From positions 1-64,000 of IMG/VR virus record IMGVR_UViG_3300044821_000131: 64,000 nt of DNA; one strand, written 5' to 3'. The translations under genes and the position numbers were made by a program. The stretch's first letter is position 1; every line of letters begins with the position of its first letter. Shown one piece after another: positions 31,904 through 54,991 of this stretch. The notes under the pieces are model-generated. The model was not told where the DNA came from and ran no database searches. It worked only from the letters and a program-made list of their open reading frames with translations.

Positions 31904-33827
31904 ATGAAGTATTTTGTAAATGGACATTGCTTGAATCCAAAGGCAAACGATGACCTTGTTGTGCCACCGCTCTGTGCGTGCTGCCATAAACCACAGCATA
32001 AATGGAACACCATGCGCGTTCTCGGATGCGGTGGAGATTACGAGGACTGGCCGTGTAGACTGTGCCAGCCAGAAGAATATGAAAAAACTTTACGAGACGC
32101 CTATCTCTAGTCGGCACGATATAAAAGCTGAGCCGCAGCCAACTAATGATAGTCATGAACCAAATGACTCCTGCGGATAAACAGAACGCGCCAATAGAGC
32201 GATTTGATGCTCCACCGGGCTCGGCGGAGCGTGCTGGCCAGAATATGGAACGCGTTTTTAGGTGGTCTAAGGTCTGTGACTGTAAATCCACCGCGTCAAC
32301 GTGTGAAATTCGATGCAAGGGCGAATACGTCAACGCCACATGGACGATGACTGCGACATTTTACCCAATGCTTTCTTGCGATGAATGCGGCGCGACATGG
32401 AAACTCGACGCAGTTAACGTGGGAGTTGACCTACAGTCCCGCCGAAAGAAATAAAAATATGGTATTAACTCAATAGACCAACGACCAATGACACCAAACC
32501 AAGCCAGAGATGGACTGCTCGAAGCCATGCCGCTGACAACGGAAGCGGTAACGACGATAAAGAAATGGGGACGGGAATGCTCTGATGAGCGCAAGGCTGA
32601 CCCTGAAACCTACAATAAATGCCCGCGCTGCTATGGTCTCCACAGCATCCGTGGAAACTTCGACAACCTGTGTGATGGGTGCGTGAAAACAATCCTCGAA
32701 CACTTCCCAAACCATGAAAGCGTGCCGCACATCAAAGCAGCACTCGCTTAGATGTTTAACGTCCGCATGAGTCGCGGTAAATCGTATGGACATCACAAAA
32801 TTAAGCATTAAAGAATGTGCGGAACTTCAATCGCACGAAGGCAATTCCGAACTGGACAGGCGCGTAATGGAAGAACAGGACCGCATCGTTCGACTTTCCA
32901 TTGAGCAACTCACGGCGCTCTTGCTTGCCAGAAGTATTCGGCCAGATAAAACCGACATCAGGCTGAGAGCGGTAAGAGATGAACTCCTCACTCGCTTAGA
33001 TGTTTAACGTCCGCAGAATCCATGCGGCGATTTCAAAATGACATCCAAAATTGCAACTGAACCGTTCAAGCACGGGAACAACCCGCATTGGCTTCATGCG
33101 GTGGTTCGGCGACTGGTTGCATGTCTGCACGTTCACCGCTGGGAAGAAACGCTTTGGAACGCATGGGGCATAGACGTGGAGCAACGCTGCCGCTGCGGTC
33201 AATACCGGCATCACCTGTTTGAGCATCGTCGCGGTTTCTGTCAAGAACCAAACTGGCAACTTGGAAAACATCCCAACCGATACATGGCAAAATGAACACT
33301 GATAATAGTCGAAAATATGAAAACGAAAATAAGATATTCGGATATGAATGGTCGGACATCCAGCGAGCGCAGCAAGGCGGAAGGCTGGCGCAGCCAGTCC
33401 GAACCGGCAACCTAAACGCATCGGTGCAATGCTTCCGATGTCACAAATACTTTCGGCTGCCGCAAACGATGGAAACCGACCCGTGGCCGGTGCAATGCCT
33501 TCACTGCGGCTATATGCACACGTCGCATGACGGAGAATCGGCTATGTGGCCGAAATGGGGCGATGATAACAAATGGCATACAGTGGCCTAACGCCGTGCG
33601 TGAGCCATCCCGGATTCACGACACACAACAATCAAAAACCTGAACGAATAAAGTGCAGCGGCCAACCGGGATTGGCTCGACGCACTTGTTAGGCAGCACG
33701 GTTTATGAAAACAAAACCAATGATAACGGAAACAGTGACACTCTCTTTTGAGGTGAAGCTCAACTACCAAAACGATGAAGGCCGGGCATGGCTCGTAAAA
33801 TCGCTGAAGCGTGATGCTCGGAGATAA
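31904..33827 (+). CDS. Small cassette-like ORFs (31904-32110, 32146-32454, 32488-32751, 32786-33007, 33038-33295, 33292-33591, 33705-33827)
   Basis: Short, often Cys-rich ORFs separated by attC sites or remnants; 33705 read directly (MKTKPMITET...DARR*). Confidence 0.55.
32741..33015 (+). repeat. 27-bp direct repeat cactcgcttagatgtttaacgtccgca (32741-32767, 32989-33015)
   Basis: Exact match; each copy contains an attC core GTTTAAC and they flank ORF 32786-33007. Confidence 0.9.
33002..33110 (-). other. attC site
   Basis: Minus strand: GCCGAAC-CACCG-CAT[G]AAGC-CA[A]TGCGG...CCGCA-TG-GATTCTG-CGGAC-GTTAAAC. Confidence 0.75.
33586..33694 (-). other. attC site (canonical geometry)
   Basis: Minus strand: R'' GCCTAAC, 5 bp, L'' CGT[C]GAGC, CA[A]TCCCGG...CCGGGA-TG, L' GCTCACG, 6 bp, R' GTTAGGC. 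Confidence 0.9.
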
Positions 33828-39262: not shown

Positions 39263-39787
39263 ATGAAGATACATCTTTTGGTTGGCCAGCGAAAAGAGAG
39301 CTATGCTGGCGAGTTTGCTCCTGAAGTTTTGGAAGCCATAGACGAATTCGGTAATTGCGAAAATGCCGGCGAATGGCTGCAGGGTAAGATGAAGGAGTAC
39401 CGCGTTGACGCTTCTTTTGAAGCACTAGTCATAGTTACATTGGAAGTTCCTACACTTAAAATTTTGGAACGTTTACGTCCGAATAATGAACCTATTGTCG
39501 CCGAGGTGGTAGACACAGATTTATTGACCCTATATCTAAAAGATTCAGACGGTATTTGGAAATCACACAGCTACGAAACGTTATCCGATTTGGCCGGGGA
39601 GTTTGCCAAACGTAACATAAAAATCGGCAATGACGTGAAGATCGGCAATTTCGTGAAGATCGGCAATGACGTGACGATCGGCAATCGCGTGGCGATTGGC
39701 AATGACGTGATGATCGGCAATCGCGTGACGATCATTGATAACACATGTATACCTCCGGAGCTTATCATTCAAAAAAGACTAAGCTGA
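39263..39787 (+). CDS. Chimeric gene: unrelated N-terminus plus hexapeptide module (paralog 3, 6 repeats, no C-terminal domain)
   Basis: LYLKDSDGIWKSHSYETLSDLA block begins mid-gene; 18-bp units at 39620-39727; ends at a broken attC. Confidence 0.75.
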   Translation: MKIHLLVGQRKESYAGEFAPEVLEAIDEFGNCENAGEWLQGKMKEYRVDASFEALVIVTLEVPTLKILERLRPNNEPIVAEVVDTDLLTLYLKDSDGIWKSHSYETLSDLAGEFAKRNIKIGNDVKIGNFVKIGNDVTIGNRVAIGNDVMIGNRVTIIDNTCIPPELIIQKRLS

Positions 39788-39896
39788 GACATCGGCACGG
39801 TCGAGAAATGACGGATACATTTGAAATCGCAACCAAACTAAAATCTATGGCCTATGGAAAGAGTAGTGCCGATTGTTCTCCAACACCGTGTTCGGC
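39781..39896 (-). other. attC site lacking its R' box
   Basis: aagctgagacatcggcac...gtgccgattgttctccaacaccgtGTTCGGC; arms nearly identical to the 42442-42552 site. Confidence 0.75.
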
Positions 39897-40062
39897 GGAG
39901 CCGTCTTGGACGGCCTTCGTCGCGCGAATGAAAAAGGAAGCTCCAACGTTGGTCCCGGATGAAAATGACGACAAGTGGAAAAATTTGCATGCTGTTTATA
40001 TCATGGGCTACGCTGCTTGCCTCGATACCATGAGAGCAGAATTGGACGTACAGATCGACTGA
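39808..40062 (+). CDS. Small ORF starting inside the attC at 39781
   Basis: MTDTFEIATK...DCSPTPCSAEPSW; DCSPTPCS is encoded by the attC arm. Confidence 0.55.
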   Translation: MTDTFEIATKLKSMAYGKSSADCSPTPCSAEPSWTAFVARMKKEAPTLVPDENDDKWKNLHAVYIMGYAACLDTMRAELDVQID

Positions 40063-41162: not shown

Positions 41163-41207
41163 ACTTGGAATGAGGATAATTTTTGGAGCCGACGGCTGCA
41201 ATTCCGT

Positions 41208-43357
41208 ATGAGCAATCCGCGTGATCCCCTTACACCTGAACAAATCAAGCACTGGCGTGACATGCTTGTCGGTATGTTCGGTCCTTGGGCCTTCATAATG
41301 CCAGAGGAGGACATCCAGCGTATGAGGGAGCATTTACAAAGTGATTTGGATTCACATGAAATCAATGACTCAAAAGAATAAACGGAAACGGTTGGTGTGA
41401 CTTGTTATGCCACGAGAACACTCAATGTCGTGCGAATGGCCAGAGGGTTGTAGCTGTGGAGCATCAGCGTGGAATCGATTGGAGCGTGAGCGTGACTGGT
41501 ATCGCTGTCGCGTAAAACTGTTGGAACAGCACAAGTCAATGCTCCGAGAGCCAGAACTAACGCTGGTATGTGATATCATGGCAAACGGCCAACTAATGCC
41601 CGACCCAGACGGGAAACGATATGGGCCTAACGCAGACTTGTCAGGCATATCGATAACAAAACTGACATAAAACATATGACTGAAACTCCACAAACCAAAA
41701 AAACTCTGCTGCCGAAATACGAAGACGGAAGCGGATATAGGATCGAAAGAGAACTGTGTGTCTTCTGCCACAAACCGCTGCTCGACTCATTCCACTTTGC
41801 CAGCGATGACGGTAAGCAACACTGGCACACATACTGCGCAAACAGAAAAGGCGTAACGTCCCGGATGAGCCGCCCGCGATAGGCGACTCACGAACACCAA
41901 AAGATTTATGATCAAAAAGAAAGCGTCAACGCGGGTTGGCTCCATCGGGCGGGTTATGCCTCAGTTGGTGATATGCGACCATCATGGGCATGACTACTGC
42001 GAGGGATGCCAACATAACGAACCCCACAAAGCAAACAGTGAGGACGACGGCGAACTCTGCACATGCGGCGGAGTCTGTGGGGCAAACGGGCCAAACTTCA
42101 ACGTGCGCTGCCTGCGACATAACGCCTCAAGCTGAGGCACGTCGGACTAAAGACTTTATGAAACCTGTGAAACCAAAAATCCGTAGCGATAAAAACAAAC
42201 CGTCCAACCGACGTTGCCTCCGGCGCGGTGTTAGGCGACACGATTGGATAAACGGCCCCGATATGATTCCGAAGCCTGTAAAAAAGGCGATCAAAGAATG
42301 GCGGGCCATCACAAGTCCAATGGAGAAAATCGGATTCATCCTGCACGCTTTCGACCCGACAATACAGTTCCGCTGTCCCGACAGTAACCGAGTGTTTGAT
42401 ATGTCAATAAGTGCCGTCAAACGCATAAATGCCGCCTTGTCGCCTAACGCCTCAAGCTGAGACATCGGCGACCTGCGATGTCCAGCAACCCAAAACCTTA
42501 TGCTCAAAACTGAAAGCGCCAATACCGATTGTTCTCCAGCGCCGGGTTCGGGTGCTGGCTTGGATAACTGAATGGGTCGAAGCAATCTGGAAGGCGTTTC
42601 GACCGCCAAAACGGAAGCGGCTGGAACTGCGGCTCTGCACATGGACTGCCGCAGACAAGCTGATTCGGGAAGGTGGCGGCGCTTGGACGGTAGCCGCCGA
42701 AGATGACCACAACATGGTGCTTGGGTGTGTGTGGTTGGAACGCCTGGAACAATATCCCGACTTCTCGAAGCAGCAGTCGAACGGTGAAGTCAGCGATGGC
42801 GGGACGCTGACTTCCGAATTGAAATCCAAACGCGAACCCGCCATTCGCTGAATTGTTATGGCACTAATACACGAAGAAACTGAACACGAGCTTGGAGCGA
42901 AACTGATGGTATCGGAACGCCAAGAAGGTGAAACCCGCGCCCCGTGGAAAATCATCACGCTCGACGCAGACCGATTCGAGAATCTAACACCAACGGAACT
43001 CCGAAAGCTCGGAAAGTGGCTCATACACCAAGGGAGGCGCATCGGAAGTGAATACAAGTCCAACGGTGCGTTGAAGGCCAAGAGCCATAACGAAAAGCTG
43101 ATCGACAGCGGAAGGAAATTATGAGCTTTAAAAACGGCGGATATAACAACGGGCTTGGTCGGCCAAAGGCGAAGAAGCTGTTCGCTCCGGCGCGTTGTTC
43201 TACGGCGTGGTTGAGCGTGGAATCCCGTTGGCCAGTCAAGGGTGAACTCGAAACCAAAAGATGCCTGACAATCCTAGACGCGGTAATAGAAGGAAAACGC
43301 GCCCTCCAATGTGGGGCGTGGCGCGTAACAATAACTCAGTGCAACGGAGCGCCGTAG
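41208..43357 (+). CDS. Small cassette ORFs (41208-41381, 41407-41670, 41676-41882, 41908-42135, 42158-42460, up to 42429-42851, 42858-43124, 43121-43357)
   Basis: One ORF per inter-attC segment; no function recognised. Confidence 0.6.
41851..41959 (-). other. attC site
   Basis: Plus strand GCGTAAC-gtcccg-gatgagccgcccgcg...cgcggg[t]tggctc[c]atc-gggcgg-GTTATGC. Confidence 0.82.
42117..42236 (-). other. attC site
   Basis: Minus strand GCCTAAC-ACCGC-GCC[G]GAGG-CA[A]CGTCGG...CCGACG-TG-CCTCAGC-TTGAGGC-GTTATGT. Confidence 0.88.
42442..42552 (-). other. attC site
   Basis: Minus strand CCCGAAC-CCGGC-GCT[G]GAGA-ACAATCGG...CCGATG-TCTCAGC-TTGAGGC-GTTAGGC. Confidence 0.85.
42776..42861 (-). other. attC site with a short deletion next to R''
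   Basis: Plus strand GTCGAAC-ggtga-agtcagcgatggcggg...cccgcca[t]tcgctgaatt-GTTATGG. Confidence 0.75.
43085..43203 (-). other. attC site
   Basis: Minus strand GTAGAAC-AACGC-GCC[G]GAGC-GA[A]CAGC...GCTG-TC-GATCAGC-TTTTC-GTTATGG. Confidence 0.82.
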
Positions 43358-43405
43358 AACAGTTAATTAAACCAACGTTGGTCGTTTAACTCATACGAAA
43401 GCCGA

Positions 43406-43440: not shown

Positions 43441-44985
43441 ATGACCGACGACGTAGCCGCACCCCCGGGAGTGGAAATTACAGCTTGGGATGACTTTCCC
43501 AAGAAACGCCAGCAGATTCTCACTGGCGCTAAAACTGCCCTGCAAGAATCATTTCCCCAATCCTATGGCGGGGTGCGGCTTGAACTACACGACCTCGATT
43601 ACGACAATCCCAAGGAATTCACATTGTCGGAACAGAAGGACGCCCTGATGAAGAACCAGTTTCTCCATCACAAACTCAAGGGTACGTTAAAATTATTCGA
43701 TGAGAAAACCGGTGCGTTGCTGGATCAGAAAACTCAGACGCTCATGCGAGTTCCTTACCTTACCGAGCGTGGTACATTTCTACATAATGGTAACGAGATC
43801 ACCACCAACAGCCAGGCTCGGCTCATGCCGGGCATCTATACGCGGCGTAAGAATTCTGGTGAAATTGAGTCTCAGGTGAACGCCAAGCGTGGATCGGGAT
43901 CATCCTTCCGTGTACGTCTCGAACCCGAGTCCGGTTTGTTTAAGGTCGACATCGGTCAGAGTAGTCTGCGGCTTTATTCGTTGTTGAAAGATATTGGAGT
44001 GTCCGATCAGCAGATTGAGAAGACTTGGGGACCAGAACTGTTGAAGAAGAATCAGGACTCCTACGATGCCAGGGTGTTCGAGAAGGCTTACGATCGATTG
44101 GTGCGGCGTCCCGATCCGAAGGCCACGCGCGAGCAGAAGGTAGAGGCAATCAAGCAGGCTTTGGACAATACGCAGGTGGATCGGTCGGTGGTCATGAGGA
44201 CATTGCCGAATCTGTTCGCCACCAAGTTCTCCTCGATGTTGGCATTCGATCCTACCATGCCTCGGCCGCAGAGCGAGAAGAAGGAATTCAATCACGACGA
44301 TTGCCTGATGCTGGCGGAGCTGTTGAATCAGAAGTTTCATGCTGGCATTCCGTTGGATGCCCCGACCTCAGAGATCGTAGCCATGGTGATGGGTGAAATA
44401 CAGAAGCTCATGCCGTCGGTGAATGAGCAGATGCTGGCACAGACTGTAGGGCAACAGCAGAAAGAGGCGCGATCGAAACAAGGTTATCTGATGTTGAATT
44501 TCGAACCGGAAGACGCCATGAGGTTTTCCAAGTGGTCAAGGCAGAATATCCCGGATTCGAAACTGGGTGCGTCCGGACGTGAAGACACCCCGCATATCAC
44601 TTTGCGTTGGGGTATCAACACGGGTGATATTGGGCACCTGAAATCATTCTTCTCAGAACAGTCCCCAGTCCAAGCCACGCTCGGCGCTCTGACTCGATTT
44701 CCTGGCGTCGACGACGGAAACCAAGATGCACTAGTGGCGCCGGTAGAGTCCGAATCCATTCACAAGCTACACCATGCTGTCGTATCGACGTTTCATTCTC
44801 ATCTCGGACCCGTCAAGTTCAATACCTACCGGCCACATGTTACTCTAGCCTATTTAAGGCGTGGCGAGATGCCGGAATTGGAAGGTAACAAGGAGTTTCA
44901 TGGCCAGACATTCCAGTTGAAGAAGGTGGTGTATTCCAATCCTCGCACCAGCTCGTATATTGACATTCCGCTGGGTACAAATTAG
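43441..44985 (+). CDS. RNA polymerase beta subunit N-terminal fragment fused to a 2H phosphoesterase domain
   Basis: VPYLTERGTFLHNGNEITTNSQARLMPG matches RpoB IPLMTxxGTFIINGxERVVVSQLxRSPG; C-terminal PHITL (44593) and PHVTL (44836). Confidence 0.82.
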   Translation: MTDDVAAPPGVEITAWDDFPKKRQQILTGAKTALQESFPQSYGGVRLELHDLDYDNPKEFTLSEQKDALMKNQFLHHKLKGTLKLFDEKTGALLDQKTQTLMRVPYLTERGTFLHNGNEITTNSQARLMPGIYTRRKNSGEIESQVNAKRGSGSSFRVRLEPESGLFKVDIGQSSLRLYSLLKDIGVSDQQIEKTWGPELLKKNQDSYDARVFEKAYDRLVRRPDPKATREQKVEAIKQALDNTQVDRSVVMRTLPNLFATKFSSMLAFDPTMPRPQSEKKEFNHDDCLMLAELLNQKFHAGIPLDAPTSEIVAMVMGEIQKLMPSVNEQMLAQTVGQQQKEARSKQGYLMLNFEPEDAMRFSKWSRQNIPDSKLGASGREDTPHITLRWGINTGDIGHLKSFFSEQSPVQATLGALTRFPGVDDGNQDALVAPVESESIHKLHHAVVSTFHSHLGPVKFNTYRPHVTLAYLRRGEMPELEGNKEFHGQTFQLKKVVYSNPRTSSYIDIPLGTN

Positions 44986-45711: not shown

Positions 45712-47163
45712 ATGCTCACTTACGAAAAGATTTTCGCGCAGGCTAAAAAAGCTTTCGTCGAATCCAAATCTGCTACTGCCGAACCGGCTCAGCCCACAGA
45801 GGATACCGTTCCGGTCAATCCTGACGCGATCTTGGCTATCACCAGCAAGTTGTTAGCTGTGACTAGAGGTGAGGCGGATCCGGACGAACGTGATAGCCTT
45901 CAATTTAAAAGAGTTCACACTCCCGATAAACTGTTCGCCGAACGCATTAAGATGGATGCCCATAAACTGCGTAAGATCGCGATGCGTCGCGTTTCGCGTG
46001 TCCGCAATCTATCACCTATCGGTGTGGCGCATTTCGATCCTTACACGGGAGGATTGATCGTTGGGCATCCGTTATCCAGTCCTTTGGAAGAGACGAACCC
46101 GTTATCGCTTACGGAGCAGGCGAGACGCGTGACGCAGATGGGACCTGGTGGTATTCCTTCCTCGGATTCGATCACGGAAGAGGCACAATCTGTGTCTCCT
46201 TCGATATTCGGTTTCTTGTCAGCGATCGAAGGGCCGGAATGCTTTTCAGATGACACAGAGGTGTTCACTTATAACGGGTGGAAGTTTTGGAGTAGCATTA
46301 CAAATTCGGATCGTCTGGCCTGTCGTGATGAACACGGGCAAATGTTTTTCTCGGCCCCTAGTCGCCTAATAGCTGCACCTTATACTGGACCTATGGTCCA
46401 AGCTGACGCTCGGATGTTTCATTTAAAGGTTACGCCGAATCACAGGTTACTTGTCGCTAAGCACATGAGAAAATCACAAGTTCCCACGACTTGGTTTAAA
46501 ATTTTTGCCGGTGATTTTTCTGATCATAATGTTTTGCGATTCGACACCGGCAGCCTTCCATATTCTGGAAATTCTGTTTTAACATGGTCTCTACCCGATT
46601 ATGCTCTTGATAAGTTCATTCCGGAATACTTGTTCGATGCACCAATTTCTGCCCGACAGAAGTTGTTTGAAGCCCTACTTTTGGGAGATGGTCGGATTAA
46701 CAAAAACCACACCAATTTTACCAGCAGCAGCAAACAATTGGCTACTGATTTTGAACGTTTGGCCGTAGGCTTAGGACACACCACCAATTTTAGAAAATAT
46801 TTCGACAAGCGACCCCATGTACAAGCTTGGACTTATGAGATTAGTATTTTGAAGTTGCGCGAGCGCGTGGCGGCTAGAAAACCCAAGTCTGGTGTTGGCG
46901 GGCTGTTTTCGATAGTCGATTATTCTGGTATTGTGTATTGTGCCACGGTTCCCGGCGGCCTGTTGCTGACTCGACGTGGCGTATCTACCGGTGTATGGTC
47001 AGGCAATAGTGAACGCATCGGTGTAGATACGCGTCTCGCTTGGGGCGCTAACGTTGGCTCAGACGGAAAAATTTATCAGAAACTCTTGAATCGCAGGACT
47101 GGTCAGCATCAGTATGTGTCACCGGACGATCTCGTCGGTCGCACGGTTGGTATCCCTGAATAG
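45712..47163 (+). CDS. RNA polymerase beta subunit middle fragment, intein-containing
   Basis: DERDSLQFKRV (cf DDIDHLGNRR), LEETNPLSLTEQARRVTQMGPGGI (cf [24 protein letters not shown]), FGFLSAIEGPE-SERIG (cf YGRICPIETPEGPNIG). Confidence 0.88.
   Translation: MLTYEKIFAQAKKAFVESKSATAEPAQPTEDTVPVNPDAILAITSKLLAVTRGEADPDERDSLQFKRVHTPDKLFAERIKMDAHKLRKIAMRRVSRVRNLSPIGVAHFDPYTGGLIVGHPLSSPLEETNPLSLTEQARRVTQMGPGGIPSSDSITEEAQSVSPSIFGFLSAIEGPECFSDDTEVFTYNGWKFWSSITNSDRLACRDEHGQMFFSAPSRLIAAPYTGPMVQADARMFHLKVTPNHRLLVAKHMRKSQVPTTWFKIFAGDFSDHNVLRFDTGSLPYSGNSVLTWSLPDYALDKFIPEYLFDAPISARQKLFEALLLGDGRINKNHTNFTSSSKQLATDFERLAVGLGHTTNFRKYFDKRPHVQAWTYEISILKLRERVAARKPKSGVGGLFSIVDYSGIVYCATVPGGLLLTRRGVSTGVWSGNSERIGVDTRLAWGANVGSDGKIYQKLLNRRTGQHQYVSPDDLVGRTVGIPE
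46240..47007 (+). mobile_element. Intein (256 aa) with partly deleted LAGLIDADG domain
   Basis: Starts CFSDDTEV, VTPNHRL, only one ALLLGDG motif, ends VYCATVPGGLLLTRRG...WSGN, +1 Ser. Confidence 0.88.
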
Positions 47164-54571: not shown

Positions 54572-54991
54572 GGGCACGTACTGGTATCGATTGTTGTTGG
54601 GACTGAAAGACTGCGTGTAGCGGATGGTCGTTGGCCGCTTTAAACTCCGACCAAAACGAAAACGCTAATAGCGGATTCAATATGGGGCCAAGTGTGGCCG
54701 AAGCTGACGCGCTCCTCGCTAAGTTCGGATACACTGAAGCCGTTCTGGCCTGATTAAACAGGCCTCCCGATCTGCCGGGTTAGATGCTCGCTATACCGGC
54801 GGATCGTCACCAGCGAGACCAAGCCTTGGATAGGGCAACGGCTGTTTTTCTGAACAGAGCCGAGAATCTGGTTGGGAGTTTGTCTGAAGCTGGTTGTCGG
54901 TCCTTTCAGGCAGAGTATAAAATCGAATACACACGTAGCGGTTTGAAGCACTAGCAGCAAGACAGGGGTTCGACTCCCCTCGTGTCCACCA
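54572..54991 (+). ncRNA. ssrA: tmRNA (one-piece, 420 nt)
   Basis: Acceptor stem GGGCACG/CGTGTCC-ACCA with G3:U; T-arm aggggTTCGACTcccct; pk1 gcgg/ccgc plus ggtcg/cgacc; probable tag ORF 54664-54753 ANSGFNMGPSVAEADALLAKFGYTEAVLA*. Confidence 0.93.

Follow-up and report, generated by a model that had tools for sequence, protein, structure and literature searches.

We analysed a 64,000-nt stretch (hereafter, the window; positions 1 to 64,000) of the 204-kb direct-terminal-repeat phage genome IMGVR_UViG_3300044821_000131, from peat. Between 33.0 and 43.2 kb it carries eight attC-type integron recombination sites, five of them within 41851-43206, interleaved with small open reading frames on the same strand. 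A slash marks the crossover point in the cores and in the peptides encoded across it. The features, all on the + strand, are as follows.

32741..32767 (+), first copy of an exact 27-nt direct repeat (second copy at 32989-33015); it covers a left core plus 8 nt of an attC body with no matching 3' arm and no covariance model hit, so it looks like a truncated attC.
32786..33007 (+), ORF of 73 aa whose TAA stop lies in the left core GTTTAAC of the 33002 site.
33002..33113 (+), attC site, 51.8 bits; the loop holds ATG 33038, and the 3' arm and right core GTTCGGC encode ..WLHAVVRR.
33038..33295 (+), cassette ORF of 85 aa that starts in the attC loop.
33292..33591 (+), ORF of 99 aa whose TAA stop lies in the left core GCCTAAC of the next site.
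33586..33697 (+), attC site, 85.1 bits, with perfect GCCTAAC...GTTAGGC cores; the loop has no ATG, and the next ATG (33705) lies after the site.
39263..39787 (+), hexapeptide-repeat protein ORF whose TGA stop lies in the 5' arm (GCTGAG) of the 39770 site.
39770..39899 (+), attC site, 55.6 bits, with a degenerate left core (AAA instead of AAC), so probably immobile; the loop holds ATG 39808.
39808..40062 (+), cassette ORF of 84 aa that starts in the attC loop.
41377..41410 (+), possible collapsed attC remnant, not detected by the model: a core-like AATAAAC that holds the stop of ORF 41208-41381, then GGTTGG..TTGTTATGCC with ATG 41407.
41676..41882 (+), ORF of 68 aa whose last 8 codons (SRMSRPR, then stop) are encoded by the 5' arm of attC A.
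41851..41962 (+), attC A, 92.2 bits; left core GCGTAAC, right core GTTATGC (41953-41959); two in-frame ATGs lie inside it, 41908 in the loop and 41956 in the right core.
41908..42135 (+), cassette ORF of 75 aa, Cys/His-rich; the tail N/ASS plus stop comes from attC B.
42117..42239 (+), attC B, 82.4 bits; left core ACATAAC, right core GTTAGGC (42230-42236); the loop holds ATG 42158 and GTG 42167, and the 3' arm encodes RRCLRRGVRR.
42158..42460 (+), cassette ORF of 100 aa, flanked by GTTAGGCGAC and GTCGCCTAAC, complementary at 10 of 10 positions; the tail N/ASS plus stop comes from attC C.
42442..42555 (+), attC C, 92.2 bits; loop ATG 42500 opens a 23-codon frame that closes at 42569.
42552..42851 (+), ORF of 99 aa from GTG 42552, right after the right core (alternative start, ATG 42429, 140 aa); the last 22 codons (N/GEVSDGG..AIR) are encoded by the next attC.
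42776..42864 (+), attC site, 44 bits; left core GTCGAAC, right core GTTATGG (42855-42861), which contains ATG 42858.
42858..43124 (+), cassette ORF of 88 aa from the ATG of the right core; its stop overlaps the next start as ATGA.
43085..43206 (+), attC site, 59.1 bits; left core CCATAAC, right core GTTCTAC (43197-43203); the loop holds GGAAGGAAATT followed by ATG 43121, and the 3' arm encodes LFAPARCS.
43121..43357 (+), cassette ORF of 78 aa that starts in the attC loop.

The phage has no integrase: no PF00589 hit and no tyrosine recombinase occurs in the whole genome. Considering that a CALIN (an attC cluster lacking an integrase) is defined by at least two attC sites on one strand less than 4 kb apart with no intI nearby (Cury et al. 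2016, PMC4889954), the five sites in 41851-43206 and the two in 33002-33697 qualify, whereas site 39770 stands alone. Pfam and PHROGs gave no function for the small cassette proteins.

Structure and distribution of the attC sites

To determine whether these hairpins are attC sites, we built a covariance model from the phage sites. The model found the eight sites listed above and none elsewhere in the 204-kb genome. In 50 kb of plasmid R100, its only hit was the attC of aadA1 (43.6 bits, E 4e-7). Gapless and gapped inverted-repeat scans showed only a diffuse genome-wide excess in which the known sites scored weakly, and a generic AAC...GTT arm scan was close to shuffled controls except at these sites. 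Rfam, which has no attC family, found only a tmRNA.

The conserved triplets AAC and GTT are present in 17 of 18 seed sites. The cores in the window include GCCTAAC, GCGTAAC, ACATAAC, GTCGAAC and CCATAAC on the left, and GTTAGGC, GTTATGC, GTTCGGG, GTTATGG and GTTCTAC on the right. The inner L helix has an extra T and an extra C/G on the 3' arm and a 7-nt unpaired spacer against a 5-nt spacer, an arrangement that aligns with the bottom strand of the aadA1 attC. The helix is 94% paired, and 11 of 14 pairs changed on both sides. The covariation score was 0.506, against 0.153 for shuffles and 0.13 or less when the partner was slid, and no shuffle out of 500 reached the observed score. Site lengths are 89-130 nt in the window and 88-138 nt in the family, plus one of 200 nt. 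G.T and A.C mispairs are equally rare, which points to a DNA-level rather than an RNA-level constraint.

The same family forms arrays in at least 14 other phage contigs, including a direct-terminal-repeat record and a provirus. Five other records also lack an integrase, but in two contigs (L040 and L037) an integron-integrase gene sits at the end of the array. In L040 a 317-aa protein scores 258.7 bits on TIGR02249, is 39% identical to IntI1 over its full length and follows the array on the same strand; L037 has the same layout. Exact-motif matches in three further contigs were chance matches inside unrelated coding sequence with no 3' arm. A blastn search of 39.5-47 kb against the phage collection and a search for related loci with the 514-aa flanking protein found nothing.

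Because the record is a metagenome assembly, and because the best source of matching DNA is probably its own source sample, we considered whether the array is an assembly chimera or a piece of bacterial integron wrongly joined into a phage contig. This is very unlikely. One Logan contig of 7.6 kb covers the whole stretch in question at even depth, and pieces recur in a 2019 rhizosphere run. The sites are interleaved over 10 kb with phage genes on the same strand, such as an exonuclease, and the window also encodes a DNA polymerase and a helicase. In addition, the same architecture occurs in the other phage contigs described above.

Cassette boundaries and polarity

In an integron gene cassette, the core at the start is complementary to the inverse core at the end, because the crossover lies inside the conserved triplet. 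When the right core of each site was compared with the left core of the next site, that is, across the ORF, 3.62 of 4 positions matched, with 76% of pairs matching at all four positions and 60% at all ten (p = 7e-24). By contrast, the two cores of one hairpin matched at 2.19 positions, the same as random pairs (2.18, of which 11% were perfect). Blocks of 91-98% identity between contigs run from left core to left core. Blocks shared between the window and the related contigs L003, L012 and L040, and between L009 and L012, begin and end at the left core. A 91% identical block in L003 starts at the AAC of attC A; ORF 41908 has an 88% identical homologue there that is followed by a different cassette. 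Compensatory arm changes distinguish attC B from its counterpart in L012, and a unit homologous to the 42776 site plus its ORF occurs in L040.

The R100 hit lies antisense to aadA1, indicating that the phage coding strand is the attC bottom strand. Consistent with this, the integrases of L040 and L037 sit at the array end in the canonical geometry only if the coding strand is the bottom strand. Canonical polarity, with the crossover at the right core, was rejected on the basis of the R100 control, the integrase geometry and the block boundaries, although the assignment rests on one canonical attC, two contigs and a handful of shared blocks. Open-frame length could not tell the coding strand in the short inter-site segments. 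Thus, the original prediction that the sites are attC-like and of inverted polarity was supported. Read along the genes, a cassette consists of the C of the left core RYYYAA/C, the attC hairpin, the right core GTTRRRY, the ORF body and then RYYYAA.

We also examined whether the hairpins could instead be phage regulatory or shuffling modules unrelated to integrase action, acting as RNA translational operators or as PeSL-like repeats that mediate homologous recombination. The absence of an integrase from this phage and the five other records, together with the start codon in an unpaired loop, would fit such a role, as would mosaic sites: the 5' half of attC C matches a site in L003 over 37 nt while its 3' half differs, and one attC is shared by L009 and L023 with different flanks on both sides. 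However, cores that pair across the ORF and not within the hairpin are not predicted by a structural RNA or a plain repeat, the model retrieves a clinical attC, and integron integrases abut two arrays with exact RYYYAA/C junctions. Moreover, there was no excess of promoter-like sites (4 found, about 3.5 expected by chance, none of the four in an attC), no +-strand terminator-like site and no G.U excess over A.C. We therefore regard this alternative as improbable.

Reading frames that open and close inside the attC sites

The original prediction placed start codons in the central region of attC sites or in the core itself. ATG 41908, 42158, 43121, 33038 and 39808 all lie in the loop (the variable terminal structure) of a site, and ATG 42858 lies in the right core GTTATGG. 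By contrast, ATG 41407, also predicted to lie in a core, follows a GTTATGCC core-like motif, but there is no model hit and no stable fold at this position. As predicted, RCLRRGVRR, LFAPARCS and WLHAVVRR are translations of the 3' arm plus right core, and HNASS, PNASS and NGEVSDGG are ends of upstream ORFs encoded by the next site.

To test whether loop ATGs occur more often than by chance, we compared the main downstream frame with the control frames. An in-frame open loop ATG was present at 32 of 46 sites outside the window against 10 of 92 control frames (70% against 11%; Fisher p = 4e-12), and at 5 of 8 against 2 of 16 in the window. The loop is 37% A, and the mean unpaired probability around the ATG is 0.58, against 0.13 in the arm. 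Upstream ORFs end inside the attC at 8/8 window sites and 46/48 outside sites, at the TAA of the core, the TGA of the GCTGAG arm or an ATGA overlap in the loop; such overlaps were found in 10 of 36 cases. The 3' arm and right core encode a median of about 23 N-terminal residues. Since all three reading frames are used, this peptide is a by-product of DNA-level constraint.

Homologues of two window genes support starts inside the attC. For ORF 42158, the conserved WINGPD motif begins right after the right core, and the only in-frame starts lie in the loop. Three homologues keep an in-frame loop ATG although their loops differ by 15 and 27 nt. For ORF 42858, 9 of 10 homologues start at the core ATG, with the N-terminus MALIHEE. 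Homologue tails diverge right after ..SPN and ..HN (CAT AA/C), which is the crossover, in agreement with the prediction that each C-terminal tail depends on the neighbouring cassette.

An alternative is that the sites are genuine attC sites but that the ATGs inside them are incidental, real translation starting downstream of the right core at ATG, GTG or TTG codons, with the attC as an untranslated spacer or leader. In its favor, the record's own gene calls start ORF 42158 at 42263 and the ORF after attC C at GTG 42552, site 33586 is followed by an ATG outside the site, and many sites have GTG or TTG codons just after the core. In addition, 14 of 46 outside sites lack an in-frame loop ATG, and attC C and its relative in L003 (3053-3164) have a loop ATG out of frame with the main ORF. 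However, WINGPD lies upstream of 42263 and has no in-frame start after the core. Combined with the frame enrichment, the conserved MALIHEE and the ATGA overlaps, these results make this alternative unlikely. Nevertheless, initiation inside the attC sites is inferred from sequence rather than from ribosome, proteome or reporter data. Codon-usage scores over these small ORFs were weak, and frame profiles were too weak to place starts. The only hint of expression is one 215-nt contig from an RNA library that spans attC A, and it could be contaminating DNA. ORF 41908 may start at either of its two in-frame ATGs.

The original prediction also proposed that the cassette following attC C might be silenced by a 1-nt shift. 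ATG 42500 is indeed out of frame with the 42552-42851 ORF, and two homologues carry an in-frame N-extension from a loop ATG. However, this ORF may start at GTG 42552 or ATG 42429, so silencing is not shown. We set aside a programmed +1 frameshift, because there is no slippery motif and the misfit arises at the join of the attC and the ORF body, not inside the attC.

Discussion

Taken together, our results indicate, with fair though not full confidence, that this stretch carries an array of integron gene cassettes in a jumbo phage without an integrase of its own, in which the hairpin precedes the gene and no spacer is left. After a cassette is inserted or excised, its start would travel with it, while the last few residues of the upstream protein would be set by whichever cassette follows. 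We infer that an integrase supplied in trans, by the host or by a co-infecting phage of the kind seen in L040 and L037, moves the cassettes.

As far as our literature searches show, this layout has not been described. The sites share with integron attC sites such as that of the aadA1 cassette of In2/Tn21 on R100 the RYYYAAC and GTTRRRY cores, the unpaired spacers, the extra bases on one arm, the variable loop and the cassette-specific core pair. By contrast, the phage ORFs lie on the bottom strand, start codon and N-terminus lie inside the attC, there are no intergenic spacers, the second extra base is usually C rather than G, and the genome has neither intI nor attI. Whole arrays are reversed and appear to be read polycistronically. 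Qi et al. (2023, PMC9892861) described attC clusters without an integrase in virulent and temperate phages, and cassettes with DNA-modification genes are seen here too (Mom, a DNA methylase and PAPS reductase in related contigs). Section 3.4 of that study reports neither reversed cassettes nor starts embedded in attC, and the family described here also includes phage contigs with their own integron integrase downstream of, and co-directional with, the cassette genes. ORF-11/ORF-18 in attI1 (PMC8876359) likewise places a translation initiation region and a short reading frame inside an integron recombination site, spanning the crossover and coupling translation into the adjacent cassette, but it is a separate leader peptide that serves only the first cassette. 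PeSL modules of T4-type phages (PMC2839356, PMC4122927) are conserved stem-loop repeats that flank small ORFs in the plastic regions of large phages and mark module boundaries, but they are promoter-terminator motifs that act through homology, whereas the core-pair signature found here points to site-specific recombination. In the inverted integron-integrase group, e.g. Treponema (PMC4889954), intI and the cassette genes also point the same way, but intI is on the same strand as the attC top strand; in L040 and L037 the intI/attC geometry is canonical and it is the ORFs that are reversed.

It is about as likely as not that these arrays represent a phage-adapted lineage of integrons, in which some phages encode the integrase while others carry only cassettes. 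In such a lineage the attC loop may have evolved into a portable translation-start module, with an A-rich leader, an ATG and a disposable N-terminal leader peptide. New genes would be inserted at the far end of a phage operon, right in front of intI, and expressed at once without a Pc promoter. In a bacterial integron the same cassettes would lie antisense to Pc and be silent, so that host arrays could bank phage genes and phage arrays could draw on them.

In the standard integron model, cassettes are promoterless genes followed by their attC and read from Pc, and the attC hairpin is at most a hindrance to translation. Here the recombination site itself appears to carry the start codon and to code for both protein ends, so that recombination would move a ready-to-translate unit and rewrite the tail of the neighbouring protein. 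Gene callers that avoid hairpins can mis-start such genes, as appears to have happened for ORF 42158. This array thus provides a concrete and testable case of one DNA hairpin serving recombination and translation at once. It also shows that phage-borne integrons are more than stray fragments: they form a distinct architecture spread over many peat and soil phage contigs, with DNA-modification genes among the cargo.

The phage genome and the hairpin family

The window is the first 64 kb of a 204,257-bp virus record with direct terminal repeats, which is rated 100% complete and comes from a peat metagenome. It encodes a DNA polymerase, a helicase, a terminase-like protein and an exonuclease, almost all on the + strand, as well as a tmRNA. 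No phage in the reference collection resembles it at the DNA level. Other genes and repeats noted in the window were as follows.

32741-32767 and 32989-33015: an exact 27-nt direct repeat spanning a left core plus 8 nt of attC body; the first copy has no 3′ arm, which suggests a truncated site or an insertion into a site.
39605-39748: six 18-nt tandem units, which form the hexapeptide (left-handed beta-helix) repeat of ORF 39263-39787 and are ordinary.
43441-44985 (+): a 514-aa protein with two HxT motifs (HITL, HVTL) in its C-terminal part and a PHROGs RNA-ligase match, which probably carries a 2H phosphoesterase/LigT-like domain.
45712-47163 (+): a 483-aa ORF that looks interrupted by an intein-like insert (Cys after ..AIEGPE, and a GN|S-like end near ..VWSGNSE); PHROGs matches residues 141-254 to a thymidylate-synthase family.
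54572-54991 (+): a full-length tmRNA gene (103 bits; tag peptide ARYTGGSSPARPSLG).

Inspection of positions 41200-43400, 32600-33720 and 39700-40020 showed long imperfect hairpins, whose 5′ ends read RYYYAAC and whose 3′ ends read GTTRRRY. ORFs stop in the 5′ part, and an ATG lies in the central part. Single-sequence folding was only moderately convincing, with z from -0.1 to -3.3, and a generic hairpin scan of the genome was near background; the case therefore rests on comparison with other sequences. A 20-nt motif from two of these sites, B (42117-42239) and C (42442-42555), recurs in an IMG/VR contig (L003) inside a complete hairpin, and also, in a short 66-nt version, in a Deltaproteobacteria MAG (L006; JAYVFX010000982). 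Homologues of ORF 42158 led to further phage contigs with the same elements. Eighteen sites aligned with conserved ends and variable loops. In the inner helix, 94% of cells pair and 11 of 14 pairs change on both sides, and the covariation score is 0.506, compared with 0.153 for shuffles and 0.13 or less when the partner is slid.

The hairpins are attC sites

To determine whether the hairpins were integron attC sites, we built a covariance model from them. The model found exactly eight places in the whole phage genome, all on the + strand between 33.0 and 43.2 kb. As a control, it found a single place in 50 kb of plasmid R100, which is the attC of the aadA1 cassette (43.6 bits, E 4e-7). ATG 41407, which the original prediction had placed in a core, is not in a detectable attC, and the site at 39770 has lost its left core.

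The decisive test was the pairing of the cores over 45 neighbouring site pairs. The right core of site n is complementary to the left core of site n+1, across the ORF, at 3.62 of 4 variable core positions; 76% of pairs match at all four positions, and 60% over ten bases. By contrast, the two cores of one hairpin match at 2.19 of 4, no better than random pairs at 2.18 (binomial p = 7e-24). In the window, the pair around ORF 42158 is GTTAGGCGAC and GTCGCCTAAC, and the pair around ORF 42858 is GTTATGGCAC and GAGCCATAAC. This is what integron recombination produces, because the crossover lies inside the conserved triplet, and it is predicted neither by an RNA operator nor by a plain repeat. The phage itself has no tyrosine recombinase, and neither do five other records; the window therefore holds a CALIN, an attC cluster lacking an integrase. 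Clusters of attC sites in phages, and their recombination by IntI1, have been published (Qi et al. 2023, PMC9892861).

The cassettes are reversed relative to their attC sites

Three lines of evidence on polarity agree. First, the R100 hit lies on the strand antisense to aadA1, and the phage + strand shares the 7-nt and 5-nt spacers and the extra bases on the 3′ arm with the aadA1 bottom strand. Second, blocks of 91-98% identity between unrelated contigs start at the AAC of one left core and end at the next left core. This holds for the window and L003, for L009 and L012 (two further contigs) and for the window and L012, as well as, by eye, for the window and L040, indicating that the hairpin travels upstream of its ORF. 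However, one attC is shared by L009 and another contig, L023, with different flanks on both sides, so breaks also occur at the right core, or sites can be exchanged.

Third, two contigs that hold homologues of window cassettes, L040 and L037, carry an integron integrase. L040 encodes a 317-aa protein that scores 258.7 bits on TIGR02249 (cut-off 265) and only about 100 bits on XerC/D, and that is 39% identical to IntI1 over its full length, including the integron-specific insertion. L037 holds the first 138 residues of a similar protein, scoring 103 bits. In both contigs the gene follows the array on the same strand, and the last cassette ends in a left-core junction, GGGCTAA|C or CGCCGAA|C, about 30 nt before the integrase ATG (L040 2726-2755; L037 about 2557-2588). 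An attI site would have to be very short or overlap intI, and the two spacers are not obviously alike. Turned over, this is the textbook layout of intI, attI and attC top strands, but with every ORF reversed. Integrons with intI on the attC strand are known (PMC4889954), but their geometry is different. In the Deltaproteobacteria MAG, two short attC sites (L006 90-158 and 1932-1999) share the same conserved 5′ motif, and the 321-aa ORF between them lies on the opposite strand, which is the usual cassette orientation; this is a hint at the host lineage and a contrast with the phage arrays.

The cargo of related phage arrays (L040 2009-2725 and 2756-3709; L037 499-1311 and 2589-3002; L009 11397-12848) includes a Mom-like protein (the cassette next to intI), a PAPS-reductase-like protein, DUF1643 and a DNA methyltransferase, which look like DNA-modification or anti-restriction functions. 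The + strand of the phage genome has more G than C (54,476 against 49,401). If this reflects replication direction, the attC bottom strands would lie on the lagging-strand template, where folding is favoured.

Start codons appear to lie inside the attC sites

The same family forms arrays in at least 14 other phage contigs, always on the gene strand. To examine whether ATGs in the loops were connected with the downstream ORFs, we defined the main downstream frame only from sequence after the right core. An ATG in the loop with an open path into that frame occurs at 32 of 46 sites outside the window, against 10 of 92 for the other two frames (Fisher p = 4e-12); in the window the counts are 5 of 8 against 2 of 16. 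The loops are 37% A, and the ATG context is A-rich and sometimes has a GGA/AGGA motif. The mean unpaired probability around the ATG is 0.58, against 0.13 in the arm. That translation really starts there is inferred; one RNA-library contig spans attC A (41851-41962), although this is weak evidence of expression. A start region inside a recombination site is already known for attI1 (ORF-11; PMC8876359).

Homologues supported starts inside the attC for two window genes. For ORF 42158, four homologues conserve WINGPD immediately after the right core, and the only in-frame starts upstream are ATG 42158 and GTG 42167, both in the loop. Three homologues keep an in-frame loop ATG although their loops differ by 15 and 27 nt, and the record's own gene call, which starts at 42263, cuts this conserved part off. 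For ORF 42858, 9 of 10 homologues begin MALIHEE, at the ATG of the right core GTTATGG. A distant homologue of ORF 42858 in Chitinibacter sp. GC72 (VIRW01000006, 10001-10261) sits at the end of a prophage-like region next to an AlpA-type gene, where the model found no attC site. In the case of ORF 41908, two in-frame ATGs lie inside the site, at 41908 (loop) and 41956 (core), and we could not choose between them, while the site at 33586 has no loop ATG. All three reading frames relative to the core are used, at 16, 15 and 6 sites, and the encoded peptides (median about 23 residues) are therefore by-products of the DNA. G.T and A.C mispairs are equally rare, which again points to a DNA-level constraint.

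The 42442 cassette was an exception. ATG 42500 opens a 23-codon frame that closes at 42569, whereas the ORF body (42552-42851) is in another frame; by contrast, its homologues P0007 and P0008 have an in-frame N-extension from a loop ATG. The original prediction proposed that this cassette was possibly silenced by a 1-nt shift. No indel lies inside the attC, and the misfit sits at the join of the right core and the ORF body. The 5′ half of this attC matches an L003 site over 37 nt, while the 3′ half differs, so that it looks like a swapped or mosaic attC. The gene may still start at GTG 42552, as the record's gene call has it, or at ATG 42429. The ATG is confirmed to be out of frame, but silencing is not confirmed.

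Upstream ORFs end inside the attC sites

The upstream ORF stops inside the site at all 8 window sites and at 46 of 48 outside sites. The stop is the TAA of the core, a TGA in the arm, or a stop in the loop, and in 10 of 36 cases the stop and the next start overlap as ATGA. We found no excess of promoter-like sites (4 found, about 3.5 expected by chance), none of the four lies in an attC, and there is no +-strand terminator-like site, which fits polycistronic reading. PeSL modules of T4-type phages are a functional analogue without site-specific recombination. In a limited literature search, we found no report of arrays of reversed cassettes whose start codon and N-terminus lie in the attC loop and whose upstream neighbour's tail is attC-encoded.

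Homologue tails diverge exactly at the crossover. After ..ALSPN the tails read ASS, ESSSATRK.. or DQAETSAR.., and after ..HN they read EKLID.., AKIQP, DKMSQ.., KTDQP and others. The tail is therefore set by the neighbouring cassette.
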